This document shows, in pieces, positions 37,481 through 41,729 of a stretch of DNA of 64,000 nucleotides; the first letter of the stretch is position 1, and the number at the start of each line of letters is the position of its first letter. Location: the sequence record NC_042018.1. One strand, 5' to 3'. Position numbers and translations under genes: made by a program. The notes below the pieces were generated by a model, which ran no database searches, was not told where the DNA came from, and saw nothing but the letters and a program-made list of their open reading frames with translations.

Positions 37481-38416
37481 ATGACCACGGAGAAACCTAA
37501 AATGACCAGCACGCCCTTAGAGCTCTTCGAAGCTTTTGAAGAGTTACAGTCTGACATCTTTGCCAAACACGAAGGTGAGAGTATTACACCTGAGTTATTA
37601 GGTCGGGTTGAAGCTGATTTCTTCGATGCAATTAACCTGTGGCGTTACCGTCCCTCGTTGATTCCTCGTACTAAGGGCCGTCTGTTGTCCGTAAAGGTAA
37701 CAGTAAATGAAGCGGGTAATGGCCTTACTGTTACTCCCAGCGATGATCTGAAAACAATCCTGGAAGATCTCATTCGTGAGGCCCTCCGTGATAAGAACTC
37801 GTTTCACTCAAGGAATCACCCGATGCTTGAATCTGGACATTTCCGCTCACAGCTTAACCTGTTTGTAAAATACGACGGTCGACTGCTTAATCCGTTCTTG
37901 TCAACCATAGAACGGCCTGATGCAGAGAACCAGCACGTTGAACACCTGTTCATCGGATTCAGAAAATCTTTCGATCGGTTATTCCATACCGATGGGTTTG
38001 AGAAAGAGTTCCCTGACCTCATCCGTCGGGCAGAACAATCCGGTAAAGCGACTCTGGCTAAATCCCATGTCGAGATTATCGTTATCAAGAGCGCGATGGG
38101 AATAAACCCTGAAACCTTGGTTAACGAACATAATCTGGGCGAGTACACCGGTCCTAAGCTGGTGTTAAGTGGGGGAGCGATAGATGTACTGCACAAGCTG
38201 TTTTGGTTCGGCCCGCAAAACGTTGGCGACTTGCCTTCAAAAGCAGGTGAAAGCGAATTGCGAGAACTGGGCTATTGTCAGCGTATGCTTGTAAAGAACG
38301 CACCCAAAGACAGAGACCAGTGTGTCATCATGTTAACCGCCCCAGGGCTGCTGTACGCAATTAAGCAGTACCAAGCAGCCAAAAACTTACCACCGTCTGA
38401 TTCAGCAAAACTGTAA
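37481..38416 (+). CDS. hypothetical protein
   Basis: 311 aa; GPQNVGDLPSKAG motif. Confidence 0.8.
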   Translation: MTTEKPKMTSTPLELFEAFEELQSDIFAKHEGESITPELLGRVEADFFDAINLWRYRPSLIPRTKGRLLSVKVTVNEAGNGLTVTPSDDLKTILEDLIREALRDKNSFHSRNHPMLESGHFRSQLNLFVKYDGRLLNPFLSTIERPDAENQHVEHLFIGFRKSFDRLFHTDGFEKEFPDLIRRAEQSGKATLAKSHVEIIVIKSAMGINPETLVNEHNLGEYTGPKLVLSGGAIDVLHKLFWFGPQNVGDLPSKAGESELRELGYCQRMLVKNAPKDRDQCVIMLTAPGLLYAIKQYQAAKNLPPSDSAKL

Positions 38417-38421
38417 CGTAT

Positions 38422-38447
38422 CAGGTGAGGGCTGATGCCCTCACCTG
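38422..38447 (+). terminator. intrinsic terminator
   Basis: CAGGTGAGGGC-TGAT-GCCCTCACCTG. Confidence 0.75.
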
Positions 38448-38522
38448 TGATTAGTTTTTACTGTCGGTATTATGGTATTAGTCAAGCACATTTACTGACT
38501 TTACGGAATAGGATAATAAGCA

Positions 38523-39362
38523 ATGAAACAATATTTAGATATGGCGCGTCATGTACTGGAAACCGGCGTTGAAAAGAAAGACCGTACCGGCACAGGGACC
38601 CTGTCTGTATTTGGTTACCAAATGCGTTTTGACCTGGGTGAGGGTTTCCCGCTGGTGACCACGAAGAAGTGCCATATGCGTTCTATTATCCATGAACTGC
38701 TGTGGTTCCTTAAAGGCGACACCAACATTCAATACCTCACTGACAACGGTGTCACCATTTGGGATGAGTGGGCGCTGAAAGAAGACGAAATCGTCGAATA
38801 CCCAATGTCCAATTCTGACCGTGTGGGTTATGCAGTAACCAACGGTCTATGGTCTGATGGGGGTTCTCGCTTAATTGCCAAACTTAACAAGCTGGGTGAG
38901 GAAGAAGGAAACCTCTACCTGGATACGCTGGGCGTGCCGCGCAGTGAGAAATATGTTAATCGTAAAAAGGGCGACCTGGGTCCAGTTTACGGCAAGCAGT
39001 GGCGTAACTGGGACGCAACCTCCCGTCGTGGTATGATTGCCGGTCAGGCCGAAAGTATCGACCAAATTGCAGTGGTCATGGATCAGCTGAGAAAAGACCC
39101 TGATAGTCGCCGTATCATCGTGTCAGCCTGGAACGTTGCAGAGCTGTCGCAAATGGCCTTGGCTCCGTGTCATGCCTTCTTCCAGTTCTATACTCGTGAA
39201 CTGAGTTTTGAAGAGCGTGAGAAATGGGTCATTATGAACGATGAAGATGAGAAGCTGGAAAACTATCTTAACGAGAGAATGGTTGACAAAGAGCTTAACG
39301 AGATGTGGATGAACGATCGTAACGTTCCAACTCGAGCGCTGTCTTGTCAACTCTATCAGCGT
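38523..39362 (+). CDS. thyA: thymidylate synthase, exon 1 (280 codons)
   Basis: [39 protein letters not shown] (catalytic Cys); ends CQLYQR. Confidence 0.93.
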
Positions 39363-40451
39363 AAACAACACTGCGCCTTCTAGTGGTGACACTAGTCGAA
39401 GAACACTCCCTAAAACGGGAAGAACTCCAATTGGAGAGAATCCGTTACTAAGTAATCCATTTCCAGGCATACTTCTTTTTTAAAAAGGAGGTTGTTATGG
39501 AAGCTGTGTGTTATATCCTCTCTTTTAAGAAAGAAGGAAAAGTGAAAACGTACATTGGTCATACGGTTGAGTTTGATAAACGTTTAGCTCGTCATCTCAG
39601 AGAGCTTAAGCAAGGTAACCACCACAACAGTGAGTTACAAGCTTTATATAACGAAGGCTGGGAATTTGACAGCCACAAGCTCATTCCTGTTAAGAATAAA
39701 GTTTTGGCTCACAAGTTAGAGCAGGAACATATTCTCAATAGCCAAAATAATCCTGACGTCGTCAATATTGAATGTGGTAATGACACTTACACCAACAATC
39801 CTCGTAAAGAGGAAATACGGGTGAAACTGATTACTCATTTAAAGAACTTCATGGACAGTCTTTCTGAGGAAGAAAAGAAAGAAGTCTATGGACGGGTTGG
39901 CGAAGAAAATGGAATGTACGGTTCTACTCACTCCGAAGAAGCACGCAAAATAATCAGTGAAAAAGTTAAGGCTTATTACGAGACACATGACGCACCTGCT
40001 AAAGGTAGAAAGCTTACCGATGAGCAACGTGCTCTTTTGTCCATTCTTGCATCCAATCGTACCGGTGAGTCTAATCCCTTCTATGGTAAGACTCATAGTG
40101 ACGAAACCCGCAAGAAAATAGCCGAAGCTAAAAAGGGTAACCTCCCTGTTAACTCGAAGCAGGTATCGATTAACGGTGTGGTTTATAAAAGTATGTCAGA
40201 AGGTGCGAGAGATGTTGGTGTTAATCCAACCGTTGCTCTTTGGCGTATTAAAAGCGTTAACCCGAAGTATGCTGATTGGAAATGGGTTTAAATGTCCAAC
40301 GACCAGAACGTGATTGTTCGTAGGGTTCAAGTGAACTCGAAATGGGAGAGCTTCTGCATATGCAGAAGGTGATATGGTCTGATCTGCATGGTGACATGCA
40401 GCTGCAAGTAATGTTGCGGGGTGGGAGTAACGAACCCACCTGAACATATTG
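39363..40451 (+). mobile_element. group I self-splicing intron (1089 nt) in thyA
   Basis: 5' exon ends in U and intron ends in G. P1 GCGU/GCGC(39373-76); P10 CACU(39369-72)/AGUG; P7 GACCA(40301-05)/UGGUC(40375-79); P8 hairpin 40351-68. Splicing restores YQR|[11 protein letters not shown]. Confidence 0.9.
39497..40291 (+). CDS. intron-encoded GIY-YIG homing endonuclease (I-TevI-like architecture)
   Basis: CYI..YIG, KRLARH, HHNSELQ..YN, LEQ..I, NUMOD3-like repeats (GMYGSTHSEEAR, PFYGKTHSDETR), C-terminal HTH. Confidence 0.9.
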   Translation: MEAVCYILSFKKEGKVKTYIGHTVEFDKRLARHLRELKQGNHHNSELQALYNEGWEFDSHKLIPVKNKVLAHKLEQEHILNSQNNPDVVNIECGNDTYTNNPRKEEIRVKLITHLKNFMDSLSEEEKKEVYGRVGEENGMYGSTHSEEARKIISEKVKAYYETHDAPAKGRKLTDEQRALLSILASNRTGESNPFYGKTHSDETRKKIAEAKKGNLPVNSKQVSINGVVYKSMSEGARDVGVNPTVALWRIKSVNPKYADWKWV

Positions 40452-40748
40452 AGTGCTGACGTCTTCCTCGGCGTGCCGTTTAACATCGCCAGCTACGCGC
40501 TGCTGATTCACATGGTTGCTCAACAGGTTAACATGGTGCCTGAAGAGTTCGTGTGGACAGGCGGTGATGTGCATCTGTACTCTAACCACCTGGAACAGAT
40601 TAAAGAACAGCTGACCCGTGAACCACGTCCGCTGCCAAAACTGGTTATCAAACATAAGCCGGCCTCTATCTTTGAATATAACTTCATTGACTTTGAGCTG
40701 CAGGATTATGATTCACATCCGACCATCAAAGCACCGGTCGCGATTTAA
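40452..40748 (+). CDS. thyA: thymidylate synthase, exon 2 (98 aa)
   Basis: [40 protein letters not shown]. Confidence 0.93.
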
Positions 40749-40762
40749 AACCATTTAATCTA

Positions 40763-40792
40763 TACTCCTACTCCCGTTGGGGAGTAGGAGTA
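40763..40792. terminator. bidirectional terminator (ACTCCTACTCCC family)
   Basis: TACTCCTACTCCC-GTTG-GGGAGTAGGAGTA between convergent genes. Confidence 0.8.
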
Positions 40793-40802
40793 TTTATATT
40801 GC

Positions 40803-41729
40803 TTATTTTTTGCTTGCAATAAATTCAGAGAGTTTATTACATTCGGTGACGATAGCCAGGTTCAATTTGGTTACCTTAGCCACAGCGGTAATCCAAATCT
40901 TAAGCATCTCCATTACTTGACGAACGGTAACACCCTTTTCCCGTTCCGGCGCTTGTGAGTCATCGGTAGTCAAGCCCAGAGATTTTAGATGCTCAAACGA
41001 TTCGTAATACTTCTTGTAGAACGATTCGCTGCCTTGCAGGGATTTGAACTCTAGGTCCGCGTGCTCAACATAATACTCACATGTGCTGAGCGTTTGGGAG
41101 AAGTCTGTGGATGAAAAGGTTTTCTCATCCCCACCGGCGCTGATTAACTTCTTGGCGTAACCTTCCAGATCGTTGTAGAGTTTCGGCTCAACGTCTTTGC
41201 GTTTTTCCAGCTCGGTTAACGCATGGTCAAGGACGTTCTTACGCTCTTCAGCAATCTTGATGATTTTGTCACCGCGTGCTTTAACGTCGTCTTCGATATC
41301 GATGATTTTCATCTTCTCTTTGAACTCGACGGTGTTCACTACCTTCTTGCATTCCAGCAAGCTGGCTTTGGTTTCTTTCACAGCGGTTTCAGCGGTCTTC
41401 TTCTTAAAGAAGAAATCCCAGATACCACGGAAGATCTTCTGGATATACTCCAGCGCTTTACCGAAGGTTTTCTTGATGGTATCCATCGCCCCTTCGTTAC
41501 CGTCACGCATCATCGGTACAATGCCTTGAGCGTACAGTGCGCCATGCAGGTATTCCTGTGCGTGGGTCAGTCCTTCCACACCAGTTACCGGTGAGATGGT
41601 GTCAATCACGCCGTCCATTACCTGCTCGATGTGCTCTGGCAGACCGTCAAAGTCTTCAGCCTGAATATCAACACCTGGAGTTTCAGGAGCAAGGCCTTTG
41701 ATTTCCAGGAAATCTTCGTAGTACGTCAT
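40803..41729 (-). CDS. putative phiKZ-type internal head protein
   Basis: Acidic N-terminus, AQEYLHGALYAQG..GNE|G.MDTIKK..IWDFFF; late motif upstream on the minus strand. Confidence 0.65.
   Translation of the reverse strand: MTYYEDFLEIKGLAPETPGVDIQAEDFDGLPEHIEQVMDGVIDTISPVTGVEGLTHAQEYLHGALYAQGIVPMMRDGNEGAMDTIKKTFGKALEYIQKIFRGIWDFFFKKKTAETAVKETKASLLECKKVVNTVEFKEKMKIIDIEDDVKARGDKIIKIAEERKNVLDHALTELEKRKDVEPKLYNDLEGYAKKLISAGGDEKTFSSTDFSQTLSTCEYYVEHADLEFKSLQGSESFYKKYYESFEHLKSLGLTTDDSQAPEREKGVTVRQVMEMLKIWITAVAKVTKLNLAIVTECNKLSEFIASKK

Follow-up and report, generated by a model that had tools for sequence, protein, structure and literature searches.

Among the group I introns that interrupt thymidylate synthase (TS) genes, the closest described relatives of the element considered here are the td intron of phage T4, with its homing endonuclease I-TevI, and the intron that encodes I-BmoI in thyA of Bacillus mojavensis, related to those of the beta22/SPbeta type. 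The element itself is a 1089-nt td-type group I intron carrying a homing endonuclease gene, and it splits thyA of Erwinia phage vB_EamM_RisingSun. It lies in a window of 64,000 nt (record NC_042018.1), bases 124001-188000 of MF459646 (235 kb), and interrupts the gene between positions 39362 and 40452 of that window, to which coordinates refer unless another record is named.

The nicks made by I-BmoI and I-TevI fall at identical positions in the Gln-Arg codons of the TS gene, and I-BmoI requires a G:C pair at -2 and nicks the bottom strand at -4 (PMC3161791). According to the published oligonucleotide table, the intronless I-BmoI substrate reads ...GCCCGT at -6 to -1 and continues beyond the insertion point with AGTAATGAC, and in the intron-bearing allele G stands at -1 and T at -2. 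The C-terminal region of I-BmoI has been described as sharing little with I-TevI beyond NUMOD3 repeats. In T4 a hairpin at the I-TevI gene restricts translation, which allows the intron to fold (PMC2988022). A nuclease of another family, the HNH endonuclease gp210, is encoded by an intron of phage PhiPA3 and serves that phage in its competition with phiKZ (PMC11620839). Set beside these systems, the RisingSun element is very probably a mobile self-splicing intron of the td lineage with an I-BmoI-style homing endonuclease, residing at the I-BmoI site.

The split thyA and its junction

The region 38523-40748 is 100% identical to RisingSun (MF459646) and 90% identical to the sister phage Joad. 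GenBank annotates each of the two TS pieces as 'putative thymidylate synthase' and the gene between them as 'putative GIY-YIG family homing endonuclease', and has no intron feature. Its exon 1 coding sequence (CDS) extends 7 codons into the intron to a TAG stop at 39381-39383, inside P2, and its exon 2 CDS begins at an in-intron TTG at 40449; these CDS ends, at 39363-39383 and at 40449, are annotation artefacts. The words intron, thymidylate, homing and GIY-YIG are absent from the paper describing RisingSun and Joad (PMC6034870).

When the exons were searched one by one against the Pfam TS profile, the two matched ranges abutted with nothing lost or gained, and so the junction restores an unbroken TS, ...CQLYQR-S.... 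Exon 1 ends ...TAT CAG CGT (Arg CGT at 39360-39362) and exon 2 starts AGT GCT GAC, while the intron begins AAACAAC and terminates ...ATATTG. Insertion is directly after the Arg codon of the conserved LYQR-S motif, with G at -2 and T at -1. The td intron of the T4-type phage RB3 follows ...TTC TTG GGT, and the boundary after the corresponding Arg codon falls between -22 and -21 of that site, which puts the RisingSun site exactly 21 nt upstream of the td site. A sequence-only reading of the window had proposed a group I intron at the Arg-Ser position of thyA, 21 nt upstream of the T4 td site, and the restored TS profile, the complementary helices, the td homology and the RB3 boundary bear it out.

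Table 1. Positions of the exons, the ribozyme elements and the endonuclease gene in the window
Feature	Position	Strand	Remarks
thyA exon 1	38523..39362	+	PF00303 profile positions 1-171, E 7e-69
Group I intron, 1089 nt, td-like, subgroup IA with P7.1/P7.2	39363..40451	+	helices verified; td intron homology
P1	39359-39363 / 39372-39376	+	GCGUA / UGCGC; U39362.G39373 wobble at 5' splice site
P10	39369-39372 / 40452-40455	+	CACU / AGUG, pairs with exon 2
P2	39380-39385 / 39390-39395	+	6 bp, GUGA tetraloop
P3	39406-39410 / 40344-40348	+	complementarity
P4	39414-39419 / 39441-39446	+	complementarity
P5	39425-39428 / 39433-39436	+	complementarity
P6	39447-39448 / 40294-40295	+	2 bp
P6a	39455-39464 / 40278-40287	+	closes loop of open reading frame (ORF); 3' strand = last ORF codons, as in td
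Hairpin over endonuclease ribosome-binding site	39472..39536	+	-22 kcal/mol, z -3.3 (predicted fold)
Homing endonuclease gene, 264 aa	39497..40291	+	PF01541, PF07460, PF20987; in P6a loop, upstream of P7
P7	40301-40305 / 40375-40379	+	GACCA / UGGUC
P7.1	40306-40310 / 40315-40319	+	complementarity
P7.2	40323-40328 / 40333-40338	+	complementarity
P8	40351-40357 / 40362-40368	+	complementarity
P9	40384-40390 / 40395-40401	+	GUGA loop
P9.1	40402-40407 / 40414-40419	+	complementarity
P9.2	40420-40425 / 40435-40440	+	complementarity
Terminal G (omega G)	40451	+	aligned with 3' ends of td, JA29, Bobb, SPbetaL1 and L013/L015 introns
thyA exon 2	40452..40748	+	PF00303 profile positions 169-266 (from 40452-40745), E 5e-40

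The ribozyme

Helices were located by a script seeking the best complementary stems between conserved landmarks, and a second script checked each pair. All 15 helices are fully complementary, with standard pairs throughout and 84 bp in total (Table 1). The P1 (internal guide sequence GCGCC), P10 and terminal G proposed earlier were recovered by the complementarity script and by direct reading of the sequence. The conserved P3-P8 core is present with its P3/P7 pseudoknot, J8/7 reading GUGAUA followed by UGGUC and aligning to the family consensus GAUAUAGUC, and the subgroup IA helices P7.1 (40306-40319) and P7.2 (40323-40338) stand between P7 and P3', in the order that they have in td. The ORF occupies the loop that P6a closes, upstream of P7, and so between the P6 and P7 elements, where it had been placed. 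Without the ORF loop, and with no constraints set, the minimum-energy fold contained 68 of the 68 bp in the eleven helices that such a fold can predict (P2, P3, P4, P5, P6a, P7.1, P7.2, P8, P9, P9.1 and P9.2), at -97.2 kcal/mol compared with -73.6 +/- 4.9 for shuffled sequences (z -4.8). P7 is missing from it because it is knotted with P3, P1 and P10 because they need exon bases; the P6 pairs of the ORF-deleted core were not recovered either.

Over its final 132 nt the intron has about 80% identity with T4-type td introns at their 3' end, a match that spans P7'-P9.2 and stops exactly at the 3' splice site, and the first 60 nt, with the guide sequence and P2, match Vibrio phage phiKT1028 and Bacillus phage Bobb. 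To judge from the sequences, the match to group I and td intron features is far beyond chance. A MAFFT alignment of intron 3' halves was out of register in P7.1 and P7.2, and helices were therefore located in each sequence separately, by a script that was incomplete for SL2, Bobb and JA29. Compared with L015, a 371-nt intron without an ORF at the same site, there are nine compensatory double changes and zero broken helices; one change each is in P2, P7, P8, P9.2 and P10, and two each are in P7.2 and P9.1. P7 is GACCA/UGGUC in RisingSun and GACUA/UAGUC in both td and L015, so that pairing is kept with other letters and the change is truly compensatory, as the sequence-only reading had held. Relative to td, P3, P7, P7.2, P8 and P9.2 still pair with different letters, and P3, P8 and P9.2 are largely different. 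P10 covaries with the Ser codon in six homologues: the start of exon 2 and its intron partner are AGUG and CACU in RisingSun, AGC and GCU in L013 and L015, UCAGC and GCUGA in Bobb and phiKT1028, UCAA and UUGA in JA29, and AGUAAU and AUUACU in SPbetaL1.

The T4 td intron interrupts the same gene and belongs to the same ribozyme lineage; it shares the set of helices, P7.1 and P7.2 among them, the GUGA loops of P2 and P9, the placing of the ORF in the P6a loop and a hairpin over the ribosome-binding site. The RisingSun intron differs from it in the sequences of P3, P8 and P9.2 and in its location 21 nt upstream, and so in its P1 and guide (GCGCC rather than GCCU).

The comparison with Joad over 38023-41250 is a sharp mosaic. 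Exon 2 is 100% identical and about 500 nt downstream are 99.6% identical; the ribozyme halves are 96% and 99% identical, whereas identity falls to 80% in the endonuclease ORF that they enclose (synonymous divergence, dS, about 1), and the last part of exon 1 (about 39213-39340) has indels and can hardly be aligned. ORF and ribozyme accordingly have separate histories, as was reportedly found long ago for beta22.

The endonuclease and its probable control

The encoded protein has an N-terminal GIY-YIG domain (PF01541), two NUMOD3 repeats (PF07460, E 1.6e-16) and a C-terminal helix-turn-helix of the I-TevI type (PF20987, E 1.6e-7). Among PDB entries it matches the DNA-binding domain of I-TevI (1i3j, E 4e-11) and its catalytic domain (1mk0), and it aligns end to end with I-TevI at 29% identity, being homologous over the full length. 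In an alignment with eight relatives Y19, R29, H33, H42, E75 and N90, which are I-TevI Y17, R27, H31, H40, E75 and N90, are invariant, and Y6 is present. With the Joad allele as comparison there are no gaps, dS is about 1.0 and the ratio of nonsynonymous to synonymous divergence (dN/dS, or omega) is 0.11 (0.18 in the nuclease domain), and so both alleles have been maintained as proteins under purifying selection. The enzyme is apparently intact, in keeping with what had been read from the letters of the window, given its conserved catalytic residues and dN/dS.

Unlike I-TevI, the RisingSun enzyme has no zinc finger; the Cys-rich segment of I-TevI aligns to its second NUMOD3 repeat, which is found at that place in all other aligned relatives too. 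This argues for an I-BmoI-style build, and not against membership of the wider I-TevI/I-BmoI family. For I-BmoI itself the 266-aa ORF of the SPbetaL1 intron served as the representative: it has Tyr6, Tyr17, Arg27, His31, Glu74 and Asn87 exactly as published for I-BmoI (PMC3161791), and the 3' end of its intron is identical to the published I-BmoI intron-containing oligonucleotide, on which grounds it was taken as I-BmoI or a near-identical orthologue. The 264-aa RisingSun enzyme shares with it the GIY-YIG nuclease, two NUMOD3 repeats, the absence of a zinc finger and a linker segment (KAYYETH in RisingSun, KLYYSTH in the I-BmoI type) that is absent from other relatives. It differs in being only 36% identical to the SPbetaL1 ORF and in having a C-terminal domain that matches the I-TevI helix-turn-helix. 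The ORF is in P6a in RisingSun, whereas in the Bacillus intron it ends just before the J8/7-P7 segment, and the host of the RisingSun intron is a jumbo phage of Gram-negative bacteria. The nearest relatives found for the endonuclease are in phiKZ-type phages, at 41% identity (SL2), and the rest of the RisingSun genome gave no second copy of it and no second group I match.

A predicted hairpin (39472-39536) pairs the Shine-Dalgarno sequence GGAGG (39487-39491) and encloses the start codon. A smaller alternative upstream, within 39468-39494 (-7.5 kcal/mol, z -2.3), uses the motif AUACUUCU, common to the hairpin over the I-TevI ribosome-binding site, which has -11.6 kcal/mol and z -5.1. By analogy with T4, the RisingSun hairpin probably holds down endonuclease translation and thereby lets the ribozyme fold. 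Two microRNA matches that a relaxed Rfam search gave in this hairpin were set aside as chance.

Relatives with about 34% identity are free-standing in the Acinetobacter phages Apostate (L008 1501-2295) and Ac42 (L010 1462-2253), on the opposite strand and wedged between nrdA and an uninterrupted td. The arrangement suggests intron-less homing beside the same target gene.

Target site and proposed homing

The end of exon 1 has CAGCG at 39357-39361, the motif nicked by I-TevI and by I-BmoI in the target of each; the G-2 of I-BmoI and the essential G of I-TevI, numbered -23 from the td site, are one and the same base. The I-BmoI intron is inserted at the same site as that of RisingSun, after the Arg CGT and before Ser, and in both interrupted alleles T-1 and G-2 of exon 1 are replaced by the G-1 and T-2 of the intron end; in RisingSun CAGCGT precedes the site and the intron ends ...ATTG, so that -2 becomes T. 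No CNNNG occurs in the last 17 nt of the intron (40435-40451). That the site is of the beta22 type, as had been suggested, agrees with the I-BmoI oligonucleotides and with the Arg-Ser location of the SPbetaL1 intron, while the statement that the beta22 intron itself is 21 bp upstream of the td position was checked only indirectly. A novel cleavage geometry, suggested earlier because the intron directly follows CAGCG, is unneeded, as I-BmoI at the same site nicks at the I-TevI positions and needs the G at -2 (PMC3161791).

From these parallels a scheme for splicing and homing can be put together. The pre-mRNA would fold into the standard core, with the GCGCC guide pairing with the end of exon 1 and U39362.G39373 marking the 5' splice site, where exogenous guanosine would attack; CACU would then align exon 2 through P10, G40451 would dock and the exons would be ligated to give ...CQLYQR-SADVFLG.... 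The simplest reading of the endonuclease is an I-BmoI-like one, with binding to exon 2 DNA, the likely contact region on an intronless thyA, and with the nuclease reaching back into CAGCG to make its nicks. On the top strand the nick is expected between C39360 and G39361, and on the bottom strand two bases upstream, which would leave a 2-nt 3' overhang, and repair of the break from the intron-bearing copy would copy the intron in. The interrupted allele should be spared, because the intron puts TG for GT at -2/-1 and so removes the required G-2. Immunity of that allele and a role in competition between phages, both of which had been raised before, are plausible.

The likeness to PhiPA3 gp210 is that of an intron-borne homing endonuclease in an essential gene of a phiKZ-related jumbo phage, with intron-less relatives as potential targets; the difference is in nuclease family and target gene.

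Distribution of introns at the Arg-Ser site

Occupation of this site in a jumbo phage of Gram-negative bacteria, which the sequence-only reading had proposed, is right for RisingSun but is not a one-off, since phiKZ-like, Dickeya, Vibrio and metagenomic jumbo phages have such introns too. Homologous introns after the same Arg codon with a GCGCC-type guide are present in phiKZ-type Pseudomonas phages (SL2, OMKO1, PA02 and others), and further carriers are Dickeya JA29, Vibrio phiKT1028, Bacillus Bobb, SPbetaL1 and IMG/VR contigs of 237-250 kb. Insertion between CGT and Ser with G-2 and T-1 is also seen in SL2, Bobb, JA29, phiKT1028, SPbetaL1 and L011-L015. The introns of SL2, OMKO1, PA02, JA29, phiKT1028 and Bobb share site, GCGCC guide and a homologous core with that of RisingSun, but the peripheral helices of those in the phiKZ-type phages, JA29, phiKT1028 and Bobb are of other lengths than in RisingSun. 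The ORFs are in different loops, are different ORFs or are lacking. The library of papers searched contained no description of the thyA introns of the phiKZ-type phages, JA29, phiKT1028 and Bobb, nor of the Gram-negative cases in general.

Among phiKZ-type records 12 of 55 carry the intron, and the other 43, including phiKZ, have an uninterrupted thyA; in IMG/VR, 73 of the 80 nearest relatives of thyA are uninterrupted. This patchiness is as expected of a mobile element. The closest uninterrupted IMG/VR genes share 55-58 of 69 bases around the junction, which makes them plausible endonuclease targets. All intron-bearing alleles seen have CGT as their Arg codon, compared with 34 of 73 intronless alleles, a bias that fits a need for U at -1, though the intron-bearing alleles are related to each other.

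In SL2 (L004 1222-2312) the GIY-YIG ORF is in the P9.1 loop, a difference from RisingSun, and exon 2 is annotated 'hypothetical protein'. Two contigs of metagenomic jumbo phages, L013 (11935-12783, minus strand) and L015 (1435-1805), have introns at the same site with 3' halves 79-80% identical to that of RisingSun and a different P4-P6; that of L013 contains a different ORF, apparently broken into pieces of 98 and 66 aa.

Contigs of public sequencing runs were also searched. Runs X1 to X3 contain RisingSun- or Joad-like DNA with the intron. Record 13 of run X7, a food-fermentation metatranscriptome, has the same intron without the ORF, position 39498 being joined to 40283; it keeps the ribosome-binding site and the 'AT' of the start codon and looks like a deletion derivative. 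The alignment of X7 contigs of uninterrupted thyA relatives breaks exactly at 39362/40452. One X7 joint, from 39362 to 40454 with 'TC' between, was rejected as a product of RisingSun splicing, as it reads Ser TCT and comes from a diverged relative. Joints of the exon-exon type in X7 derive from diverged relatives, either as an intronless gene or as the spliced RNA of another organism, and are probably intronless genes.

Alternative explanations

Several points weigh against a self-splicing, mobile intron of I-BmoI style. P6 is just 2 bp. Rfam at gathering thresholds gave no match in the whole window, and a relaxed search gave a partial match of RisingSun to Intron_gpI (RF00028, gathering cut-off 50 bits) at 19.9 bits, E 0.019. 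No ligated RisingSun exon junction was seen in the contigs of the public runs. The cleavage site in RisingSun thyA is predicted by analogy, the cleavage data being those of other enzymes, and with just 31-36% identity to I-TevI and the I-BmoI-type enzyme the nick positions could differ. As to Rfam, the T4-type td intron is also below the cut-off, at 42.5 bits, and both scores are low because the ORF interrupts the model, a covariance model being unable to bridge an 800-nt ORF; homologues that are uninterrupted or without an ORF pass (SL2 core 69.9, L015 58.5 and SPbetaL1 50.7 bits). The sub-threshold score, the absence of a ligated junction from the public contigs and the two separate TS fragments annotated in the database would all suit an intron that has decayed and no longer splices, with thyA a pseudogene, the host TS in use and only the selfish endonuclease maintained. 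We consider this improbable, since no core helix is broken, the U.G pair and terminal G are retained, relatives differ by compensatory and not by disruptive changes, the ribozyme halves have stayed 96-99% identical to Joad while the ORF diverged to dS about 1, and both exons retain full, gap-free TS profile matches.

It is harder still to credit that splicing never comes into it, a free-standing endonuclease gene having been inserted and the TS fragments reassembling as reported for a fragmented phage ribonucleotide reductase. The separate GenBank CDS for exon 2 from TTG 40449 and the free-standing endonuclease relatives beside td in Acinetobacter phages could be cited for it; yet no Shine-Dalgarno sequence precedes 40449, the 294 non-coding bases around the ORF make up an entire group I core, one with homology to a ribozyme of proven activity, and the break comes right after the Arg codon of LYQR-S, between residues that are contiguous in the profile. 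An intron that splices while its endonuclease no longer homes, being inactive or kept for repression or for help in splicing, is an unlikely case but one to be kept in mind, for cleavage is argued by analogy, I-TevI also represses its own gene (PMC2988022) and ORF-less versions of the intron persist in nature. The conserved catalytic residues and the strong purifying selection over the whole length of the protein, the nuclease domain included, stand against it, and the sister intron's patchy occurrence in phiKZ-type phages that are nearly identical agrees with continuing mobility.

Implications

The RisingSun thyA intron is an unannotated, ordinary new case within a known intron family, and current understanding is unchanged by it. 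Its main value is in a correction of annotation, the RisingSun and Joad records having a single, very probably spliced, thyA in place of two fragments, and in its belonging to a broader and undescribed dispersal of this intron across jumbo phages. These cases from Gram-negative hosts add to the td and I-BmoI pair, in which the same critical Arg codon is nicked by homologous enzymes whose introns are 21 bp apart. As a comparison series, in which ribozyme and site are the same and the ORF is in P6a, in P9.1, ending just before J8/7, replaced by a different, broken ORF or absent, they lend themselves to work on the joining and separation of introns and endonuclease genes, and the phiKZ-type phages with and without the intron are a possible test system for endonuclease-driven competition between phages.

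A broader conjecture, offered tentatively and with some doubt on our part, is that the td-type introns at the Arg-Ser site form a single lineage, which has passed between Bacillus hosts or phages and four or more groups of Gram-negative jumbo phages and has exchanged endonuclease cassettes among the P6a, P8 and P9.1 loops. In phiKZ-related phages such as RisingSun, the GIY-YIG enzyme may be a weapon against thyA of co-infecting relatives without the intron, as gp210 of PhiPA3 is against its rival, and the interrupted allele would be immune to any I-TevI- or I-BmoI-like enzyme, because all of them need the same G.

Variation within the exons

Just before LSCQLYQR, exon 1 has an insertion of about 40 residues (about 39200-39340), with the result that profile position 171 is reached only at residue 255. 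Comparable stretches are present in SL2 and the metagenomic relatives, and this is the most variable part of TS between RisingSun and Joad. Two segments, 39177-39328 and 40473-40631, have 89-94% DNA identity to a longer contig with an uninterrupted thyA (run X7, record 11), whose junction resembles that of enterobacterial thyA, which hints that parts of the phage gene are of fairly recent bacterial origin.

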